Made by a program: the position numbers and the translations under genes
Source: Oculina patagonica
Lineage: Eukaryota
Direction of reading: 5' to 3'
NCBI RefSeq assembly: GCF_052425735.1
Contig: NC_135767.1
Location: 4,154,001 to 4,218,000, forward strand
Length of the DNA: 64,000 nt
The notes under the pieces: generated by a model
The model's database searches: none
Told to the model about the DNA's origin: nothing
What the model saw: the letters and a program-made list of their open reading frames with translations, nothing else
Shown: positions 33,872 through 55,121 of the stretch, one piece after another
Numbering within the stretch: position 1 is the first letter of the stretch
Layout of the letters: each line of letters opens with the position of its first letter

Positions 33872-36800
33872 GCTTAGCATACGAAACGTCAAGTTAGTAA
33901 AATGCGAATTTTCATGATGTTTATTACCGCTGTTTGTTTCATATTTTTAATCGGGTTTGTTCAATCTGATTGGGAAAAAATAGAATCTCGCTACTTTCTG
34001 TGGAATCTCCATATTATTTTTCATGAGTCTCCAGATTTTCCTTTATCAGATGTTGGCAAGTGTGAAAATCCGTAAGTAATTTTTCCAAGGGAAATTTTTT
34101 ATGGTGGGCTCTTTTGATTGGTCAGACTTTTAAATCAGAGTAGAGAAGCAAACAAGTACGACATTCGCGACTTTATCTGCTATGTTTGTCGAATTGTCGG
34201 AAATTTATAGTAGTTCGGCATGTGGGGGAAGAAGACATTTGATTCGTTTGGACCTGCAGTGAGCATTAGGCTGAATCTACGTGATTGCATTTTCACAAAA
34301 AGGCCCAAAATGTACCTTTGAAGTTTCAAACCTGCCGTTTTTGGGGGATCTGGAGAGAAGATAAGGCTTACTCTACGTGGCGTTCGGCATGCATGTGGGC
34401 GGAGAGATGTAATTCGTTTGGACCTGGAGTGAACATAACGCTGAATCCACGTGGTGTCGTTCTTCCATAAAGACCCAAACTGTACATTTTCAAGTCTCAA
34501 ACTGGCCGGTTTTCCTGTATCTGGAGCGAAAATAAGCTTTAATCTTCCTTGTGGTATTTCAACACAAGGGTCGATAATCGTCATTTTCAGTGGCTCCTGT
34601 AGCACTCTCTATACGATTCCTATAGAACTGGAGTGAAAATTAGGTTGTCCCCACGTGATGGCATTTTTCCAAAAAGACACAAACTGTACATTGCAAGTGT
34701 CAAAGTGGCCGGTTTTGCTGGATCTGGAGTGAAAATAAGCTTAAATCTACGTGGTGGTATTTCAACACAAGGGCCCAAAATCGTCATTTTCAGTGGCTCG
34801 TGTATTACTTCTTTATTCGATTGTTTTAGACCTAGAGTGAAAAGTAGGATGAATTCACGTGATGGCGTTTTTCCAAAAAGACCCAAGCTGTACATTTTAA
34901 GTCTGAACTGGCCGGTTTGGTGGATATGGAGTGAAAATAAGTTTTAATATACGTGGTAATATTTCAACACAAGGGCACAAATGTCATTTTCAGTGGCTCA
35001 TGAGCCTTTTCCTTTTTGATCTTTTTGAGCTGAAGTGAAAATTAGGATGAATTCACGTGATGGCATTTTTCCACAAAGACCCAGGCTGTACATTTGAAGT
35101 CTCAAACTGGCCGGTTTTGCTGGAACTGGAGTGAAAATAAGCTTTTTCTCTTTGTGGTGTTAGGTCAACACAAGGACGCAAAATCGTAATTTTGAGTGTC
35201 TCGTGTACACTTTCTTATTCGATATTTTTGGACGTGGAGCGTAAATAAGGATTAATCGACGTGATGGCATTTTTCCAAAAAGAACCAAAGTGTAAATTTC
35301 AAGTCTGAAACTGGCCGGTTTTGCTGGATCTGGAGTGAAAATAAAGTTCAATATACGTGGTAGTATTTCAACACAAGGCCCCAACATCGTCATTTTCAGT
35401 GGCTCATGTAGCATTTTCGTATTCGCATTATTTTGGACCTGGAGTGAAAATTAGGATGAATCCACGTGATGGAATTTTTCCAAAAGACTCAAACTGTACA
35501 TTTCAAGTCTCAAACTGGCCGATTTGGTGCATCTGGAGTGAAAATAAACTTTAAACTTTGTGGTGGTATTTGAACACAAGGGCGCAAAATCGTCATTTTC
35601 AGTGGCTCGTGTATCACTTTCTTATTTGATTCTTTTGGACCTGTAGTGGAAATAAGGATGAATTGACGTGATGGCATTTTTCCAAAAAGACCCAAACTGT
35701 ACATTTTAAGTCTCACATTGGCCGGTTTTGTTGGATCGGGAGAGAAAATCAGTTTCAATCTACGTGGTGGTATTTCAACAAAAGGGCGCAAATCGTCATT
35801 TTCAGTGGCTCATGTAGTACTTTGTTATTCGATTATTTTGCACCTGTAGTGAAAAAAGGACGAATCATCGTGATGGTATTTTTCCACAAAGACCCAAACT
35901 TTACATTTCAAGTCTCAAACTGGCCGGTTTTGCTGGATCTGGATTGAAAATAAACTTTAATCTTCCTTATGGTACTTCAAAACAAGGGCCCAAAATCGTC
36001 ATTTTCAGTGGGTCATGTAGCCGTTTCTTATTTGATTCCTTTGGACCTTGAGTGAAAAAAATAGGATGAATCCACGTGATGGTATTTTTCCAAGAAAGAC
36101 CCAAAATGTACACTGCAAGTCTCCAACTGGCCGGTTGTGCTGGATCTGGAGTGAAAATAAACTTTAATCTTTGTGGTGGTATTTCAACAAAAGGGCACAA
36201 ATCGACATTTTCAGTGGCTCATGTAGAACTTACTTATTCGATTTTTTTGCACCTGGGGTGAAAATTAGGTTGAATCCATGTGCTGGCATTTTTCCAAAAA
36301 GACCCAAACTGTACATTTCAACTGTTTTAAGTCTCAAACTGGCCGGTTTTGCTGGATACAGATTGACAATAAGCTTATCTTCCTTATGGTACTTCAAAAA
36401 AGGGCCCAAAATCGTCATTTTCAGTGGCGTATGTAGCACTTCTTTATTTGATTGTCTTGGACGTGGAGCGACAATTAGGATGAATCCACGTGATGGTGTT
36501 TTTCCAAAAAAGACCCAAACTGTACATTGCAAGTCTCAAACTGGCCGGTTTTGTGTGAATCTGGAGTGAAAAGAAACTTTAATCGTCGTGGTGGTATTTG
36601 AACAGTAGGGCCCAAAATCGCCATTTTCAGTGGCTCATGTAGTACTTTCTTACTCAATTATTTTGCACCTTGGGTAAAAATTAGGATGAATCCAAGTGAT
36701 GGCATTTTTCCAAAACGACCCAAGCTGTACATTTCAAGTCTCTAACTGGCCGGCTTAGCTGGATCTGGAGTGAAAATACTCTTTTATCTACGTGGTGTTA

Positions 36801-39800
36801 TTTCAACCTGACAAGGGAACCTCATCATCATTTTTAGTGGCCCATGTAGCTCTTTCTTATTCGATTGTATTGCACCGGGAGTGAAAATTAAGATAAATGC
36901 ACGTGATGGCATTTTTCCAAAATATCCAAACTGTACGTTTGAAGTCTCAAACAGGCCGGTTTTGCTGGATTTGGAGTGAAAATACGTTTTTATCTACGTG
37001 GTAGTATTTCAACAGAATGTCCCAGAATCGTCATTTTCAATGGCCCAAGTATCACTTTCTTATTTGATTCTGTTGGACCTGAAGTGAAAATAAGGATGAA
37101 TCAACGTGATGGCATTTTTCCAAAAAGAATCAAACTGTACATTGCAATTCTCCAACTGGCCGGTTTTGCTGGATCTGGAGTGAAAATAAGCTTTACTCTT
37201 CTTGGTGGTATCTGAACACAAGGGCCCAACATCGTCATTTTCAGTGGCTCATGTATCACTTTTTTATCCGATTCTTTTAGACCTGTAGTGAAAATAAGGA
37301 TGAATCGACGTGATGGCATTTTTCCAAAAAGACCAGAACTGTACATTGCAAGTCTCCAACTGGCCGGTTTTCCTGGATCTGGAGTGAAAAGAAACTTTAA
37401 TCTTCGTGGTGGTATTTGAACTCAATGGCCCAAAATCGTCATTTTCAGTGGCTCATGTATTACCTTCCTATCTGATTGTTTTGGTCCTGTAGTGAAAATA
37501 AGTATGAATCCACGTGATGGTATTTTACCAAAACGACCCAAACTTTACATTTCAAGTCTCAAACTGGTCGGTTTTGCTGGATCTGGAGTGAAAATAATCT
37601 TTTATCTACGTGGTGTTATTTCAACCTGACAGGGGCTCCTAATCATCATTTTTAGTGGCTCATGTAGCACTTTCGTATTCGATTGTTTTGCACCGGGAGT
37701 GAAAATTAGGATGAATGCATGTGATGGAATTTTTCCAAAATATCCAAACTGTACGTTTGAAGTCTCAAACTGGCCGGTTTTGCTGGATCTGGAGTAAAAA
37801 TACGTTTTTATCTACGTGGTAATATTTCAACAGAATGTCCCAGAATCGTCATTTTCAATGGCCCAAGTATCACTTTCTTATTTGATTCTGTTGGACCTGA
37901 AGTGAAAATAAGGATGAATCAACGTGATGGCATTTTCCCAAAAAGAATCAAACTGTACATTGCAATTCTCCAATTGGCCGGTTTGCTGGATCTGGAGTGA
38001 AAATAAGCTTTAATCTTCCTTATAGTACTTCAAAACAAGGGCCCAAAATCGTCATTTTCAGTGGCTCATGTAGCAGTTTCTAATTCGATTCTGTTGGACC
38101 TTGAGTGAAAAATTAGGATGAATCCACGTGATGTTTTTTTCCAAAAAAGACGCAAAATGTACATTGCAAGTCTCCAACTGGCCGGTTTTGCTGGATCTGC
38201 AGTGAAAATAAGCTTTAATCTACGTGGTGGTAATTCAACACAAGGGCAAATAATCGTCATTTTCAGTGGCCTATGTAGCATTTCCTTATTCGATTGTCTT
38301 GGACGTGGAGTGACAATTACGATGAATCCACGTGATGGTGTTTTTCCAAAAAAGAACCAAACTGTACATTTCAAGTCTCAAACTGGCCGGTTTTGTCTGG
38401 GTATGGAGCGAAAATAAACTTTAATCTACGTTGTGGTATTTCAACCAAAGGGCACAAAATCGTCATTTTCAGTGGCTCATGTAGTACTTTCTTATTCGAT
38501 CATTTTTCACCTTGGGTGAAAATTAGGATGAATCCAGGTGATGGTATTTTTCCAAAAAGACCCAAACTGTACATTTCAAGTCTCAAACTGGCCGGTTTTG
38601 CTGGATCTGGAGTGAAAATACGTTATTATCTACGTGGTAGTATTTCAACAGAATGTCCCAGAATCGTCATTTTCAATGGCCCATGTATCACTTTCTTATT
38701 TGATTCCGTTGGACCTAAAGTGAAAATAAGGATGAATCAACGTGATGGCATTTTCCCAAAAAGAATCAAACTGTACATTTTGATACATTGCAATTCTTCA
38801 ATTGGCCGGTTTTGCTGGATCTGGAGTGAAAATAAACTTTAATCTTCGTGGTGGTATTTGAACTCAAGGGCCCAAAATCGTCATTTTCAGTGGCTCATGT
38901 ATCACTTTCTTATCTGATTGTTTTGGACCTGTAGTGAAAATAAGTGTGAATCCACGTGATGTCATTTTACCAAAAAGACCCAAACTTTACATTTTAAGTC
39001 TCACATTGGCCGGTTTTGCTGGATCTGGAGTGAAAATAAGCTTCAATCTACGTGGTGGTATTTCAACAAAAGGGCGCAAATCGTCATTTTCAGTGGCTCA
39101 TTTAGTACTTTCTTATTCGATTATTTTGCACCTGGTTTCAAAATTAGGATGAATCCACGTAATGGCATTTTTGCAAGAAGACCCAAACTGTACATTTGAA
39201 GTCTCAAACTGGCCGGTTTTGCTGGATCTGGATTGAAAATAAGCTTTAATCTTCCTTATGGTACTTCAAAACAAGGGCCCAAAATCGTCATTTTCAGTGG
39301 CTCATGTAGCAGTTTCTAATTCGATTCTGTTGGACCTTGAGTGAAAAATTAGGATGAATCCACGTGATGGTATTTTTCCAAAAAAAGACCCAAAATGTAC
39401 ATTGCAAGTCTCCAACAGGCCGGTTTTGCTGGATCTTGAGTGAAAATAAGCTTTAATCTACGTGGTGGTAAATCAACACAAGGGCAAATAATCGTCACTT
39501 TCAGTGGCCTATGTAGCATTTCCTTATTCGATTGTCTTGGAAGTGAAGTGACAATTAGGATGAATGCACGTGATGGCGTTTTTCCAAAAAGAACCAAACT
39601 GTACATTACAAGTCTCAAACTGGCCGGTTTTGTCTGGATATGGAGCGAAAATAAACTTTAATCTACGTTGTGGTATTTCAACCAAAGGGCACAAAATCGT
39701 CATTTTCAGTGGCTCATGTAGTACTTTCTTATTCGATTATTTTTCACCTTGGGTGAAAATTAGGATGAATCCACGTGATGGCATTTTTCCAAACAGACCC

Positions 39801-42800
39801 AAACTGTACATTTCAAGTCTCAAACTGGCCGGTTTTGGTGGATCTGGAGTGAAAATAATCTTTTATCTACGTGGTGTTATTTCAACCTGACAAGGGCCCC
39901 TAATCATCATTTTTAGTGGTTCATGTAGCACTTTCTTATTCGATTGTTTTGCACCGGGAGTGAAAATTAGGATGAATGCACGTGATGGCATTTTTCCAAA
40001 ATATCCAAACTGTACGTTTGGCGTTTCAAACAGGCCGGTTTTGCAGAATCTGGAGTGAAAATACGCTTTAATCTACGTGGTAGTATTTCAACAGAATGTC
40101 CCAGAATCGTCATTTTTAGTGGCCCATGTATCACTTTCTTATTCGATTGTTTTGCACCGGGAGTGAAAATTAGGATGAATGCACGTGATGGCAATTTTCC
40201 AGAAAGACCCGAACTGTTCATTGCAAGTCTCAAACTGGCCGGTTTTGTCTGGATCTGGAGTGAAAAGAAACTTTAATCCTCGTAGTGGTATTTGAACACT
40301 AGGGCCCAAAATTGTCATTTCAGAGGCTCATTTAGTACTTTCTTATTCAATTATTTTGCACCTTGGGTAAAAATTAGGATGAATCCACGTGATGGCATTT
40401 TTCCAAAAAGACCCAAACTGTACATTTCAAGTCTCAAACTGGCCGGCTTTGCTGGATCTGGAGTGAAAATACTCTTTTATCTGCGTGGTGTTTTTTCAAC
40501 CTGACAAGGGAACCTCATCATCATTTTTAGTGGCCCATGTAGCACTTTCTTATTCGATTGTTTTGCACCGGGGGTGAAAATTAGGATGAATGCACGTAAT
40601 GGCATTTTTCCAAAATATCTAAACTGTACGTTTAAAGTCTCAAACTGTCCAGTTTTGCTGGATCTGGAGTGAAAATACGTTTTTATCTACGTGGTAGTAT
40701 TTCAACAGAATGTCCCAGAATCGTCATTTTCAATGGCCCAAGTATCACTTTCTTATTTGATTCTGTTGGACCTGAAGTGAAAATAAGGATGAATCAACGT
40801 GATGGCATTTTTCCAAAAAGAATCAAACTGTTCATTGCAATTCTCCAATTGGCCGGTTTTGCTGGATCTGGAGTTAAAACAAGCTTTAATCTTCTTGGTG
40901 GTATCTGACCACAAGGGCCCAACATCGTCATTTTCAGTGGCTCATGTATCACTTTCTTATCTGATTCTTTTAGGCCTGTAGTGAAAAAAGGATGAATCGA
41001 CGTGATGGCATTTTTACAAAAAGACCAGAACTGTACATTGCAAGTCTCCAACTGGCCGGTTTTCCTGGATCTGGAGTGAAAAGAAACTTTAATCTTCGTG
41101 GTGGTATTTGAACTCAATGGCCCAAAATCGTCATTTTCAGTGGCTCATGTATCACTTTCTTATCTGATTGTTTTGGACCTGTAGTGAAAATAAGTATGAA
41201 TCCACGTGATGGCATTTTACCAAAAAGACCCAAACTTTACATTTTAAGTCTCACATTGGCCGGTTTTGCTGGATCTGGAGTGACAATAAGCTTCAATCTA
41301 CGTGGTGGTATTTTACTAAAAGGGCGCAAATCGTCATTTTCAGTGGCTCATGTAGTACTTTCTTATTCGATTATTTTGCACCTGGTTTCAAAATTAGGAT
41401 GAATCCACGTAATGGCATTTTTGCAAGAAGACCCAAACTGTACATTTCAAGTCTCAAACTGGCCGGTTTTGCTGGATCTGGATTGAAAATAAGCTTTAAT
41501 CTTCCTTATGGTACTTCAAAACAAGGGCCCAAAATCGTCATTTTCAGTGGCTCATGTAGCAGTTTCTAATTCGATTCTGTTGGACCTTGAGTGAAAAATT
41601 AGGATGAATCCACGTGATGGTATTTTTCCAAAAAAGACCCAAAATGTACATTGCAAGTCTCCAACAGGCCGGTTTTGCTGGATCTAGAGTGAAAATAAGC
41701 TTTAATCTACGTACGTGGTGGTAATTCAACACAAGGGCAAATAATCGTCATTTTCAGTGGCCTATGTAGCATTTCCTTGTTCGATTGTCTTGGACGTGGA
41801 GTGACAATTAGGATGAATCTACGTAATGGTGTTTTTCCAAAAAGAACCAAACTGTACATTTCAAGTCTCAAACTGGCCGGTTTTGTCTGGATATGGAGCG
41901 AAAATAAACTTTAATCTACGTTGTGGTATTTCAACCAAAGGGCACAAAATCGTCATTTTCAGTGGCTCATGTAGTACTTTCTTATTCGATTATTTTTCAC
42001 CTTGGGTGAAAATTAGGATGAATCCAGGTGATGGCATTTTTCCAAAAAGACCCAAACTGTACATTTCAAGTCTCAAACTGGCCGGTTTTGGTGGATCTGG
42101 AGTGAAAATAATCTTTTATCTACGTGGTGTTATTTCAATGTGACAAGGGAACCTCATCATCATTTTTAGTGGCCCATGTAGCACTTTCTTATTCGATTGT
42201 TTTGCACCGGGAGTGAAAATAAGGATGAATGCACGTGATGGCATTTTTTCAAAATATCTAAACTGTACTTTTAAAGTTTCAAACAGGCCGGTTTTGCTGG
42301 ATCTGGAGTGAAATTACGTTTTTATCTACGTGGTAGTATTTCTACACAATGTCCCAGAATCGTCATTTTCAATGGCCCATGTATCACTTTCTTATTTGAT
42401 TCTGTTGGACCTGTAGTGAAATCAACGTGATGGCCATTTTCCAAAAAGACCCAAACTGTTCATTTCAAGTTTCAAACTGGCCGGTTTTTCTGGATATAGA
42501 GTGAAAATAAGCTTTTATTTAATCTACGTGGTGGTTTTTCAACACAATGTCCAAAAATCGTTATTATGAGTGGCTCATTAATCACTTTCTTTTTTTATTC
42601 TTTTGAACGTGTAGTGAAAATGAGGATGAATCATCGTGATGGTATTTTTCCATAAAGACTCAAATTGTACATGTCAAGTCTCAAAGTGGCCGGTTTTGCT
42701 GGATCTAGAATGAGAATAAGCCTCAATCTATGTGGTAGTATTTCAACACATGGGCCCAAAATCGTCATTTTTAGTGTCTCATGTAGCATTTTGTTATTAG

Positions 42801-42847
42801 TATCTTTTTGTCCTGGAGTGAAAATTAAGATTAATCCCCGTGATGGC

Positions 42848-43348
42848 GGAATCTCAAATGGATTCCGCTAGCTGGTCGATGCTTTGGACACCACTGCTGT
42901 GCTGTACAAAACGCTATTAAAGGGGACATTCCAGAACATTTTAACAACTTCAAAACGACCATGAACGATTCACACGGCTACAGCACAAGAAACAGCTATC
43001 TGCCCAGACTCCCAAAAATAAGAACTGACTGGGGAAAGAGAGTCACCAGCTACAAATGTACTATCGATTGGTCATCTTTACCCGATGTTTTAAAAAGACC
43101 TATGCCTTGTGACATTTTTAAACAAAAAATTAAGAACTTTTTAATAGCAAAGTACTTTTAGCTTTTTATTTTTAGAACATTATTCTTAATTTTTAGAACA
43201 TTATACTTGTAATTTTATATTTTTACCTTTTTAACTTGATTTTTAACCTTGTAATTAGTTTTATTTGAGGACCTCTCTGAAAACCACTTCATGTGACGGG
43301 AGCCTCCTCTTAAAAAATTATTTATTATTATTATTATTATTATTTATT
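42848..43348 (+). mobile_element. 5'-truncated CR1/L2-type LINE (ORF2 C-terminus, 3'UTR and (ATT)n tail)
   Basis: HGYSTRNS...PKIRTDWGKR...W..LP..LK...FKQKIK resembles the ORF2 C-terminal tail; 3' stem-loop near 43268-43310; (TTA)n tail; ATGGC duplicated at 42843-42847 and 43349-43353; the satellite resumes in register. Confidence 0.85.
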
Positions 43349-43825
43349 ATGGCATTTTTTCCAAAATGACCAAAACTATACACTCCAAGTCTTAAGCTGG
43401 CCGGTTTTGCGGGTGAGTTGAAAACACTGACTTCCGATCCGCGGACTACGGACTACCCTACTGACTACCCCTACGGACTACCCTAAATAATCAACCAAAT
43501 TTACATTTACGGTGAGACTAAGTTACTTCTGAGTTAGGATTTCGAGTTTAATTTTCGAGTTGGATTTTCAAGTTAGATTTCTTAAGTTGGATTTTGCAGT
43601 TGGATTTTTTGCCGGAATTTCCTTGTTTGCTAGAAGTTAGATCCACTTTGGTTTGCCTGCGGTTAGCTTTCATTTGTTAGCTAGGATGACACTATAATAT
43701 ATATTTATGCTTACTTATCGGCCTTAGCCGAAGTAAAAAAGAAACCGACAGAATGAAAAACTAAGGGACTGAAATTTCACTGAATTATCTTACAATTATG
43801 GAAAAGTGAGAAGAAAAAAAGAAAA

Positions 43826-43944
43826 CCCCACAACATAGGGGTAGTTCCAGTTGGTCACCCAGCCAATTACTTACCCTGTCGACAGGGCTTAACTTCGGCG
43901 ATCGGACAAGAGCCAGTGCTTTCCTTGTGGTATCAGTTCCAGGC
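43826..43944 (-). ncRNA. Divergent full-length 5S rRNA-like sequence, copy 1 (inside the transposon)
   Basis: Reverse complement gcctggaactgataccacaaggaaagcactggctcttgtccgatcgccgaagttaagccctgtcgacagggtaagtaattggctgggtgacc...tacccctatgttgtgggg is colinear with eukaryotic 5S over 119 nt; box A, box C and a downstream T-run are present. Confidence 0.8.
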
Positions 43945-44057
43945 TATATTCCTGGTTTAAATGAATCTTTCTAACAATTTGACACGTTTCTGTTTAACTG
44001 GACTAACCTTTATTAAGTGGTTTTCGTAAGTCTTAACCCTCTTATTAATTATGTCGT

Positions 44058-44183
44058 GTCTGTGACAGATACCACAAGGAAAGCACCAGTTCTTATTGTA
44101 CGATTGACTAAGTTAAGCCCTGTTGGGCACGGTTGGTAGTATTTGGATGGGGTGACCAGCCAGAAATACCCTTCGTTGTTGGC
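44058..44183 (+). ncRNA. Divergent full-length 5S rRNA-like sequence, copy 2 (inside the transposon)
   Basis: gtctgtgacagataccacaaggaaagcaccagttctt...aagttaagccctgttgggc...tagtatttggatggggtgacc...aatacc...gttgttggc followed by a T-run; more degenerate than copy 1. Confidence 0.75.
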
Positions 44184-44659
44184 CTTTCTTTTTTTTCTTT
44201 CTTCAGGCCATTGTGATCCCCCACGTTAAAAAATTTGTTTTATTCGCGGTCAGTTCGAAATCCGTCTCAAAAAAAAAATCCTACTCAAAATCCAACCCGA
44301 AAATCCAACTCGAAAAACCTACTTCAAATACAATTTGAGAATCCAACTTGGTAATCCAACTCAAAATCTTAATTTAGAGGTTAGTCTGTATCACGGTAAA
44401 GGAAAATTTGGTTGATTATTTAGGGTAGTCCGTAGGGGTAGTCCGCGGAGTAATCCGTAGGGTAGTCTGTGGAGTGGGGGTCAGTGGGTAGTCCGCGGAT
44501 CGGGGGTCAGTGTTTTCAACTCACCCCCGGTTTTGCTGTCTCTGGAGTGAAAACAAGCTTTAATCTTCCTTGTTGTATTTCAAATCAAGGGCCGAAAATC
44601 GTCATTTTTCAGTGGCTCATGTAGCACTTTCTTATTCGGACTTACCTTAAATCACGTAA

Positions 44660-44912
44660 TGGATTTCGAAGCATGAAACAACTAGGGGTATTGCTACTCC
44701 ACCTCGGTAGGAGGGTAGTGCAAAGCTAAGTGCCCCCCCAATCCCCCAACCCCCCAACCCCACCCCAAGCATTTTGTAAGGCCTGCAATATGCATTCACC
44801 CCTGCGGGTAGAAAGAGGCACTGCGAGAGCTGTCCTGCCCAAGAACACAATACAATGACTCTGGTAAGAGCTTGAACCCAGATCACTCAATCCGGAGTCC
44901 AACGCCACCGCG
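44660..44912 (-). mobile_element. tRNA-derived SINE
   Basis: Minus-strand head ttggactccggattgagtgatctgggttcaagct, followed by the conserved ttgtgttcttgggcag...cagtgcctct body. Confidence 0.7.
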
Positions 44913-46739: not shown

Positions 46740-49017
46740 GTTTTCGAGTTGTTGCTGTAATTTAGAAAGTTCCTTAAGCCCTTTGGAGTTGTTGCTGTAT
46801 TTTAGAAAGCTCCTTAAACCCTTTAGAGTTGTTGCTGTATTTTAGAAAGTTCATTTAGCCCTTTCGAGTTGTTTCTGTATTTTAGAAAGTTTCGTAAGCC
46901 CTTTAGAATTGTAGCTGTATTTTAGAAAGTTCCTTTACCCTTTAGAGTTTTTTCTGTATTTTGCAAAGTTCCTTAAGCCCTTTCGAGTTGTTGCTTTATT
47001 TTTAGAAAGTTCCTTAAGCCCTTTCGAGTAGTTGCTGTAATTTAAAAAAAAAATTACTTAAGCCCTTTCGAGTATTTGCTGTGATTTAGAAAGTTCCTTA
47101 AGCCCTTTCGAGTTGTTGCTGCATTTTAAAAAGTTCCTTAAGCCCTTTTGAGTTGTTGCTGTATTTTAGAAAGTTCACTAAACCATTTCGAATTGTTGCT
47201 GTATTTTAAAACGTTCCTTAAACCATTTCGAATTGTTGCTGTATTTTAGAAAGTTCCTTAAGCCCTTTCGTGTTGTTGCTGTATTTTAGAAAGTTTCTTA
47301 AGCCCTTTCGAGTTGTTACTCTATTCAATAAAGTACCTTAAGCCCTTTCGAGTTGTTGCTGTATTTTAGAAAGTCCATTTAGCCCTTTCGAGTTGTTTCT
47401 GTATTTTAGAAAGTTCCTTAAGCCCTTTAGAATTGTAGCTGTATTTTAGAAAGTTTCTTAACCCTTTAGAGTTTTTGCTGTATTTTGCAAAGTTCCTTAA
47501 GCCCTTTCGAGTTGTTGCTTTATTTTTAGAAAGTTCCTTAAGCCCTTTCGAGTAGTTGCTGTAATTTAAAAAAAATTACTTAAGCCCTTTCGAGTATTTG
47601 CTGTAATTTAGAAAGTTCCTTAAGCCCTTTCGAGTTGTTGCTGCATTTTAAAAAGTTCCTTAAGCCCTTTTGAGTTGTTGCTGTATTTTAAAACGTTCCT
47701 TAAACCATTTCGAATTGTTGCTGTATTTTAGAAAGTACCTTAAGCCCTTTCGAGTTGTTTCTGTATTTTAGAAAGTTCCTTAAGCCCTTCCGAGTTGTTG
47801 CTGTATTTTAGAAAGTTTCTTAAGCCCTTTCGAGTTGTTGCTGTATTTTAGAAAGTTCCTTATGCCCTTTCGAGTTGTAGCTGCTTTTTAGAAAGTTCCT
47901 TTAGCCCTTTCGAGTTGTTGCTGTTCAGTATTTTAAGAAGTTCTTCAAGCCCTTTCAATTTGTTGCCGTAATTTAGAAAGTTCCTTAAGCCCTTTCAAGT
48001 TGTTGCTGTATTTTAGAAAGTACTTTAAGCCCTTTCAAGTTGTTGCTGTATTTCAAAAAAGTTCCTTAAGCCCTTTTGAGTTGTTGCTGTATTTCAGAAA
48101 GTTCCTTAAACCCTTTCAAGTTGTTGCAGTTTTTTAGAAAGTTCTTTAAGCCCTTTCAAGTTGTTGCTGTATTTTAGAAAGTTCCTTAAACCCTTTCCAG
48201 CTGTTGTTGTATTTTAGAAGGTTCCTTAAGCCCTTTCGAGTTGTTGCTGTAATTAAGAAAATTCCCTAAGCCCTTTCGAGTTGTTGCTGTATTTTAGAAA
48301 GTTCCTTAAGCCCTTTCAAGTTGTTGCTGTATTTTAGAAAGGTCCTTTAAGCTCTTTCGAGTTGTTGCTGTAATTAAGAAAGTTCCCTTAGCCCTTTCGA
48401 GTTGTTGCTGTAATTTAGAAAGTTCCCTAAGCCCTTTTGAGTTGCTGCTGTAATTTAGAAAGTTCCTTAAGCCCTTTCAAGTTGTTCCTGTATTTTAGAA
48501 AGTTCCTTAAGCCCTTTCGAGTTGTTGCTGTATTTTAGAAAGTTTCTTAAGCCCTTTCGAGTTGTTGCTGTAATTAAGAAACTGAATTTCCTTAAGCCCT
48601 TTTAAGTTGTTGCTGTAATTTAGAAAGTTCCTTAAGCCCATTCGAGTTGTTATTGTATTTTAGAAAGTTCAAATCAGGCATTATTGCAAGCTATTAACGG
48701 AACAATTTATTTATAACTCTAATTTTCAATTCCTTTCTTTTGCTAGTTAATCTGTCCATATACTTTATTTTCCCCTTTTTTCAGTAAATTTCTTAAGTAA
48801 ACTTAGATTATGTTTGTGTTTGTGTGTTGTTGTATTTTTTATCTAAATCTTTAGTACTCCTGAACCTTTTAATAATCATGTAATAAACACTTAGGATGGC
48901 TGCCCAATCTTATAAGCCAATGGTGGTTATCTTGGGCAGCCATGCACATTATTTTATTTTTATTATTGTCTGTATTGTAAATTTAATTAAATTAAATTAA
49001 GGGTGCGCAGAATAAAG

Positions 49018-49048
<31 letters not shown>

Positions 49049-49400
49049 CAAGCCCTTTCGAGTTGTTGCTGGATTTTAGAAAGGTCCTTATGCCCTTTCG
49101 AGTTGTTGCTGCAATTTAGAAAGTACCTTAAGCCCTTTCGAGTTGTTACTGTTTATAGAAAGATTCTTAAGCCTTTTCGAGTTGTTAATGTAATCAAGGA
49201 ATTTCATTAAGCCCTTTCGAGTTGTTGCTGTAATTAATGGTCATTAATAGAAAGTGCCTCAAACCCTTTCGAGTTGTTGTTTTGTGTTGTTGCTGTAATT
49301 TACAAATTTTCTTAAGCTCTTATGAGTTGTAAGTTGCTGTATTTAAGAAAGTTTCTCTTGAAAGGTTTTTTTCGAATTGTTGCTGTAATTTAGAAAGTAC
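46740..49400. repeat. 40-bp minisatellite (ttgctgtattttagaaagttccttaagccctttcgagttg), more than 50 units, in ETS-A intron 2
   Basis: Head-to-tail units with no spacers; degenerate units extend on both flanks. Confidence 0.97.
48671..49048 (+). mobile_element. LINE 3'-end fragment inserted in the 40-bp array
   Basis: 12-bp stem ATGGCTGCCCAA/TTGGGCAGCCAT, then AATAAA and a (GTT)n tail; the array resumes after it. Confidence 0.7.
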
Positions 49401-54924: not shown

Positions 54925-55121
54925 AACAAATATTATAAATCGAACAAAAACTTATTAAAAACCCTAACTGGCAGGAGGCTGTCCAGTTGGCTATTTAGAA
55001 AGCGTGGAGGAGTTGAATTCGGGACGACCAAACACAAATCCATCTAGTGGCATGGAGGAGGATTTGAACCCGGGCCTCCGGATTACAAGTCCAATGCCCT
55101 AATCACTAGGCCACGCTGCCT
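54925..55121 (-). mobile_element. tRNA-derived SINE in ETS-B intron 2 (paralogous to 45975-46170)
   Basis: Same sequence and flanks as in copy A. Confidence 0.8.

Follow-up and report, generated by a model that had tools for sequence, protein, structure and literature searches.

What are two units of a Pol III gene doing inside a transposon that moves by cut and paste? 5S promoters in mobile elements have until now been reported only in retroelements, where what they contribute is plain: they drive transcription of the RNA from which new copies are made. Movement by cut and paste does not call for any such RNA. The element raising this question lies in a 64,000-nucleotide stretch of the Oculina patagonica genome (NCBI RefSeq assembly GCF_052425735.1, contig NC_135767.1, positions 4,154,001 to 4,218,000 of the forward strand), hereafter the window, to which all positions given without a locus or contig name refer. 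Positions 43411-44526 constitute a DNA transposon of 1,116 bp whose arms are long and inverted and which is flanked by a 10-bp target duplication; with a longest ORF of only 51 aa, it is non-autonomous. The preliminary description of this DNA, made from the letters alone, had recognised here a target duplication, long terminal inverted repeats (TIRs) and two 5S-like units pointing outward, and all of these are present. The features of the locus, with strand where one applies, are as follows.

43401-43410: target duplication, left copy (CCGGTTTTGC), a sequence with one copy in the empty monomers
43411-43620, plus strand: left inverted arm with the A-type terminus GGGTGAGTTGAAAACACTGAC..., identified by inverted-repeat pairs; subterminal 12-13-bp repeats at 43446-43485 and 13-bp repeats at 43527-43610
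43621-43737: internal sequence specific to the 5S-bearing A sub-family, matching only L002, L003, L004 and L005
43738-43824, minus strand: region 3' of 5S copy 1, with homology to the B core (core homology at query positions 328-793); minus-strand terminator T-runs at 43822-43825 and 43814-43820
43825-43944, minus strand: 5S-derived unit copy 1, outward (left); RF00001 49.6 bits, own-genome model 70.1, fold z = -0.13
43945-44057: central spacer, equivalent to the fold-back loop, with CCTGGTTTAAAT at 43951-43962
44058-44184, plus strand: 5S-derived unit copy 2, outward (right), with small insertions; RF00001 31.5 bits, own-genome model 54.7, helix I with 8 of 9 pairs, fold z = 0.02
44185-44203, plus strand: T-rich terminator after copy 2 (T8 at 44189-44196) and end of the shared core
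44204-44274: internal sequence specific to the A sub-family (genome search and local BLAST)
44275-44526, minus strand: right inverted arm; 13-bp repeats at 44275-44368 and subterminal 12-26-bp repeats at 44421-44512
44527-44536: target duplication, right copy (CCGGTTTTGC)

The outermost 44 nt of the arms (43411-43454 and 44483-44526) are 91% complementary, and complementarity of 72-80% continues inward beyond them as far as about 43620 in the left arm and 44275 in the right one, so that the arms measure about 210-250 bp; both contain subterminal 12-13-bp tandem repeats. The two 5S units are inverted relative to each other, and the only direct repeats detected in the element are short tandem ones.

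The surroundings of the element are repetitive. A 204-bp satellite (organised as a 410-bp dimer) forms an array of about 33 monomers at 36000-42847, with more monomers flanking the element at 43280-43410 and 44537-44680, and the insertion site is one such monomer at the edge of the array. Further along the window, a 40-bp minisatellite of about 48 copies occupies 46742-48670 and 49050-49235, and a tRNA-like match at 55053-55120 (minus strand) just reaches the Rfam threshold (29.1 bits versus 29), has a deleted T-arm and is not found by ARAGORN; most probably, this is either a pseudogene or a repeat of tRNA origin.

When the element and one copy of CCGGTTTTGC were excised in silico, the joined flanks aligned, without any gap at the junction, with 38 neighbouring 204-bp satellite monomers, in each of which CCGGTTTTGC is single-copy. 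The gap-free match to these 38 empty paralogous monomers confirms an insertion accompanied by a 10-bp duplication.

The two 5S-like units, which share about 80-88% identity with the host 5S, lie head to head at a distance of 113 bp, point outward and are each followed directly by T-runs, of four and then seven T behind copy 1 and of eight behind copy 2, confirming what had been read from the letters. The preliminary description had also remarked that no SINE body follows the units, and rightly so: the T-runs come directly after them, the arms are inverted and the duplication is of fixed length. It had further suggested a search of both copies with the Rfam model RF00001, which recognises only one of them. 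Copy 1 (43826-43943, minus strand) scores 49.6 bits, above the gathering score of 38, whereas copy 2 (44058-44184, plus strand) remains below it with 31.5 bits (E = 3e-4 in a local search); for comparison, the true 5S reaches 117 bits and copies from the second family of elements, called B below, 62-78. A covariance model derived from the host's own 5S gives the two window copies 70.1 and 54.7 bits, respectively, and by this score copy 2 is clearly 5S-derived despite its sub-threshold Rfam result. The spacer of the window copy is shorter than that of the copy at locus L002 by about 35-40 bp on the side of copy 1. The window copy is a decayed member of its family, with copy 2 below the Rfam threshold and the block upstream of copy 1 deleted.

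The canonical 5S genes of the coral (117 bits) reside in a 2,005-bp tandem repeat on contigs C1 and C1187. The 5S unit examined at L031:1501-3069 (C1, 45.94 Mb) also contains genes for the U1 (158 bits) and U2 (189 bits) snRNAs on the opposite strand, and thus represents a linked 5S-U1-U2 unit. A second tandem array, composed of divergent 5S variants (94-96 bits) spaced by about 518 bp, is located on the window's chromosome at C10:9461610-9469043 (L050-L053).

The genome (an assembly of 529 Mb with 14 large chromosomes) was searched with the window element and then by local BLAST. Two types of termini are distinguished here: the A-type, which is that of the window copy (GGGTGAGTTGAAAACACTGAC...), and the B-type (GGGTGACCCTATTCGG...). 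There are 97 A-type termini in the genome. Full A-type copies with the 5S pair occur at L002 (with a duplicate, L003), L004 and L005 (with an inverted duplicate, L006), and with the window copy they represent four independent insertions that are 68-84% alike and each have their own 9-10-bp duplication; the pairs L002/L003, L005/L006 and L018/L029 are segmental duplicates sharing flanks. Most elements with A-type termini, about 45 of 50, carry no 5S. These MITEs, whose termini match those of the window element almost exactly, measure 0.6-0.87 kb and differ in their interior, which is unrelated to that of the 5S-bearing copies (about 45 loci, for example L021:1501-2333 and L025:794-1632). They outnumber the 5S-bearing elements roughly tenfold and are younger, as is apparent from their nearly identical termini; because they are both commoner and younger, the 5S module cannot be needed for mobility. 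The sub-family that includes the window copy is small and old.

Family B is represented by 398 termini, or about 200 elements, which are larger than the A elements and form near-perfect palindromes, with arms of about 600 nt that are 86-99% complementary and a loop of 126 nt. Exact 8-bp duplications differing in sequence flank 17 of the 22 elements examined, and the 5S is present in seven of eight B elements selected by their termini alone. The 5S-bearing elements fall into at least six sub-families with more than 100 copies, and the assembly contains, spread over all chromosomes, at least 243 element-type 5S signatures as against 20 canonical ones. The genome-wide BLAST check proposed in the preliminary description thus turned out positively, as other insertions with different target duplications do carry the same 5S pair, and its notion of a cut-and-paste element dispersing this pair is borne out by the three further A-type insertions and by the B family. 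Two B elements, at L057:919-2399 and L076:267-1746, lack direct duplications and have mutually reverse-complementary flanks (agaaatgaaa and tttcatttct), a pattern suggestive of a rearrangement or of integration within another palindromic repeat.

A 9.8-kb element at C12:2438405-2448249 (L062), bounded by B-type termini and an 8-bp duplication (AAAAATTG) and without any 5S inside, contains an intact ORF of 812 aa (L062:6682-9120). The ORF itself has no match in Pfam, nor did a profile search against solved structures return any; a language-model search puts it among MULE clusters. It has 32 homologues, including one from O. patagonica, and of the 22 that were aligned, eight match PF10551 (MULE) and two PF00872 (Transposase_mut). 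Residues D311, C401 and H404 are invariant in the homologue alignment and D380 is nearly so, consistent with the DDE/CxxH signature of Mutator transposases. The 9.8-kb element may thus be the autonomous partner of family B, with a Mutator-like transposase (an assignment based on the homologues and the language-model search) and possibly still active. A 95% identical copy on C13 (21.49 Mb) is interrupted by stop codons. Taken together, the MULE-like homologues, the long arms and the duplications of 8-10 bp assign both families to the Mutator superfamily. For the A-type termini, the genome yielded no autonomous partner. Two candidates with such termini, of 3.98 kb (C1850) and 2.2 kb (C10), proved to contain only short ORFs without Pfam matches, and an A terminus located beside a transposase gene on C4 (60.36 Mb) belongs to a neighbouring MITE and not to a partner. 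The fold-back organisation is clear in the B copies, and the window copy follows the same plan in a decayed form; it also displays the features of a Pack-MULE-type element, namely a duplication in the range of about 9-11 bp, long TIRs with subterminal repeats, captured host sequence and no transposase ORF.

Our preferred reading, to which we assign a probability of about 0.55, is that the window element represents an old Mutator-like fold-back transposon with a 5S unit that was captured once and mirrored, and that the promoter DNA of this unit has been kept preferentially while the RNA has not. Conservation was evaluated on 28 aligned cores and on the consensus sequences of six sub-families, with the internal control region (ICR) taken as boxes A, IE and C (51 nt per arm). 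Between sub-families, identity amounts to 84-100% in the ICR, 70-85% in the spacer and 41-85% in the flanks. With CpG sites excluded, the sub-family consensuses diverge by 4-9% in the ICR, whereas the non-5S core diverges by 14-36% (p values range from 1.5e-2 to 7e-8); when only transversions are counted, five of the six comparisons still show this contrast. Among 67 copies, the positions with 95% or more identity to the true 5S cluster at 47-95, that is, in boxes A, IE and C. Both the promoter and the terminator features of a 5S gene, the ICR and the T-run, are present in the element units.

The same pattern can be read in another way, namely that the 5S units are passive cargo, a host fragment picked up in the manner of Pack-MULEs and without any role, whose ICR looks conserved owing to low mutability, cleaner alignment or gene conversion. 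We find this explanation quite plausible, if short of probable. It is favoured by the fact that ICR variation is depleted within sub-families too (1.7% versus 3.7% differences from the copy's own sub-family consensus), but the depletion is stronger between lineages (10.7% versus 47.5% variable columns). This within-versus-between contrast is not significant (p = 0.23) and does not separate selection from low mutability, so that some of the conservation could be due to low mutability, to noisy alignment of the AT-rich flanks or to ectopic conversion within a set of more than 240 copies. The 5S-less elements with A-type termini, commoner and younger as they are, point in the same direction, and so does the absence of transcript support for the element units from the RNA runs examined. 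On the other hand, the depletion of variation in the ICR is still seen when CpG sites are left out and, for five of the six comparisons, when only transversions count; the terminator T-run (four or more T within 30 nt of the 5S 3' end) is retained in 67 of 68 copies; and the module has outlasted a change of termini and six sub-family splits. Bases derived in the elements also persist, which implies that there has been no conversion from the true 5S. Constraint acting on those lineages that kept amplifying is the simplest reading of these comparisons, to which mutability, alignment and conversion may each contribute.

As far as the sequences compared here tell, the conserved feature is promoter DNA, not structured RNA. 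The true 5S adopts its canonical fold at -48.4 kcal/mol (z = -2.38), whereas the minimum-energy folds of element copies, at -30 to -38 kcal/mol, are non-canonical, with z values of -0.13, 0.02 (window), -1.39, 0.04 and -0.08 in five copies; a stable canonical three-way-junction fold was not found in the element copies tested. The preliminary description had envisaged a variant 5S-like small RNA kept by compensatory change, an idea that finds no support here, given that the element copies do not fold better than shuffled sequences and that two model pairs are broken without compensation, one in 56 of 63 copies and the other in 55 of 62. Its observation of non-canonical helix II strands (ACAAGG/CCCTGT) was correct in that the mismatch is real and family-wide, but the mismatch is uncompensated and leaves the positions unpaired in 56 of 63 copies. 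The AGGG/CCCT pair that it had interpreted as compensatory in copy 1 did not hold up either: helix V retains two of five model pairs, and the RNA folds no better than shuffles.

It is accordingly the DNA-based view that these folds sit with more easily, and we regard it as very unlikely that the element spreads a functional small RNA, be it a decoy for TFIIIA/L5 or a variant ribosomal 5S. What can be said for such an RNA is that 84% of the model pairs are standard in the model-fitted alignment, with double changes exceeding those in shuffles, and that some arms preserve 8-9 of the 9 helix I pairs; only 1-5 of 9 are left, however, in the commonest sub-family's second arm. The covariation check thus did yield an excess of double changes, but from an alignment biased towards the structure; since that alignment is fitted to the model, the copies are related and the folding energies oppose it, we do not count the covariation as support for an RNA structure.

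Sequence runs add to this picture. The window element was found in none of the runs on record as RNA. The B core was found in runs of four coded organisms and in coral metagenomes. In the one of these runs that is on record as RNA (X32, a coral metatranscriptome), coverage is deep only where the sequence equals the canonical 5S, with canonical ends, a further argument against a functional small RNA from the element. Three other runs, only guessed to be RNA, look like DNA, because their contigs extend over the spacer and flanks and not just the 5S parts. In contigs labelled as organisms B and D, the spacer shows a single difference in 107 nt, indicating that the family is not confined to one sample set.

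The history of the pair can be traced from bases derived relative to the true 5S, which are common to both families: A45>G in 66, G93>A in 64, G99>A in 65 and C63>T in 60 of 67 copies. All element arms additionally have in common a helix II change (G>A/T) and an insertion of 2 nt, UG in the RNA, ahead of position 11. The arms of the window copy and those of the B copies correspond side by side, left with left and right with right. The spacer includes blocks conserved in all sub-families, among them CCTGGTTTAAAT, identical to a 12-mer at positions -36 to -25 of the true 5S gene (estimated chance expectation about 1e-3), and the sequence just 3' of the element units resembles that following the true gene. 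The derived bases common to all arms point to a single capture; these bases, and the orthology of the arms across families, mean that the pair does not stem from two independent pseudogene insertions, in agreement with the preliminary description. The same description had considered that a lack of 5S in other family members would betray exactly such independent insertions; the lack is real in about 45 of 50 elements with A-type termini, but the conclusion is contradicted. That two unrelated 5S pseudogenes met in one MITE by chance, or that we are dealing with a segmental duplicate and not a transposon, can practically be dismissed: although most elements with A-type termini are devoid of 5S and three pairs of loci (L002/L003, L005/L006 and L018/L029) do have common flanks, the same arm order and spacer blocks recur in insertions whose duplications differ, four of them A-type and dozens B-type, and the empty site exists in 38 paralogous monomers.

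Under our preferred reading of a fold-back transposon retaining promoter DNA, an ancestral non-autonomous element captured a host 5S once, including the gene, its terminator T-run and probably the -30 region. The fold-back architecture then copied the captured module into both arms, and it is this mirroring that accounts for the head-to-head, outward orientation of the units. Two types of termini have since moved the module, the A-type with 9-10-bp and the B-type with 8-bp duplications. Since the ICR has been retained and the RNA fold has not, the module most likely acts at the level of DNA, presumably as a type-1 Pol III promoter recruiting TFIIIA, TFIIIC and TFIIIB on each arm; a transcript of about 120 nt ending at the T-run, if any is made, would be a by-product. 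Outward transcription over the arms, one of the roles contemplated previously, is unlikely, since a T-run comes directly after each unit. The likeliest benefit, hypothetically, would be chromatin that is open or insulated owing to bound Pol III/TFIIIC, so that the element stays accessible.

A more ambitious extension of this idea, which we put forward tentatively and consider doubtful, is that the Mutator-like fold-back lineage keeps the twin outward 5S-type Pol III promoters as a working module: units bound by TFIIIA and TFIIIC would shield or open chromatin and might stall replication forks head-on from either side, favouring persistence or the timing of transposition. If true, it would provide the first demonstrated case of a DNA transposon that relies on a co-opted Pol III promoter but uses no RNA intermediate. 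An active module would also offer a natural system for studying effects of Pol III complexes beyond RNA, such as chromatin boundaries, accessibility and replication. Whatever its role, the promoter portion of the captured 5S is what the non-autonomous elements have kept best across sub-families, and it has outlasted the change of termini. There is a practical consequence too: with at least 243 5S-like sequences versus 20 assembled true genes, the elements will mislead 5S annotation, FISH mapping and estimates of rDNA copy number in this coral, and related corals may be affected likewise, as the core also occurs in runs labelled as other organisms.

It remains to compare the coral element with known systems. 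Fold-back elements (Drosophila FB and relatives) are grouped with the Mutator superfamily and are characterised by long arms, subterminal tandem repeats, a short loop and duplications of about 9 bp. They share with the coral element the subterminal repeats, the short loop and arms that make up almost the whole element; no Pol III gene is known from FB arms. Dada DNA transposons, which reportedly insert into small-RNA genes with 6-7-bp duplications, resemble the coral element in being DNA transposons tied to multicopy small-RNA genes. In Dada, however, the RNA gene is the target, whereas in the coral element it is internal cargo and the insertion sites are diverse.

Pack-MULEs are described in the work of Jiang et al. 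2004, as cited in PMC10946416, as non-autonomous Mutator-like elements with captured fragments of host genes. Like the window element, they have long inverted arms, 9-10-bp duplications and host sequence between the arms but no transposase of their own, and the candidate partner identified here for family B encodes a MULE-like transposase. They differ in that their cargo consists of protein-coding gene fragments, whereas here it is a whole Pol III gene unit, mirrored in both arms and retained in an animal (coral) host across at least six sub-families with more than 100 copies.

The preliminary description knew of no precedent for a DNA transposon with 5S units, and we likewise found no published one with a 5S promoter in full-text searches of the literature or in a 2024 review (PMC10946416; Repbase and Dfam were outside the scope of this search). 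In the review, SINEs, Cassandra and Ajax are the only elements credited with 5S promoters, and Pokey, the sole DNA transposon that it tabulates, contains repeats of the rDNA spacer and not 5S (PMC10946416). The 5S-derived SINEs (SINE3/AmnSINE1, OS-SINE, MEG, Ped-1 and 5S-Sauria; table 2 in PMC10946416) are similar to the coral element in possessing a 5S-derived segment whose internal promoter is the best-kept part. They are, however, retroposons that need the promoter for their RNA template and have a body and tail but no inverted arms, in contrast to the coral element with its inverted arms, fixed-length duplications and a terminator directly after the 5S in place of a body. A further parallel is provided by the TRIM retrotransposons Cassandra from plants and Ajax from ribbon worms, which carry a 5S promoter in each LTR (PMC10946416) and are, like the coral element, non-autonomous, with two 5S-derived units, one per terminal repeat. 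Yet their repeats are direct LTRs accompanied by a PBS and a PPT and they replicate through RNA, whereas the repeats of the coral element are inverted and it moves by cut and paste.
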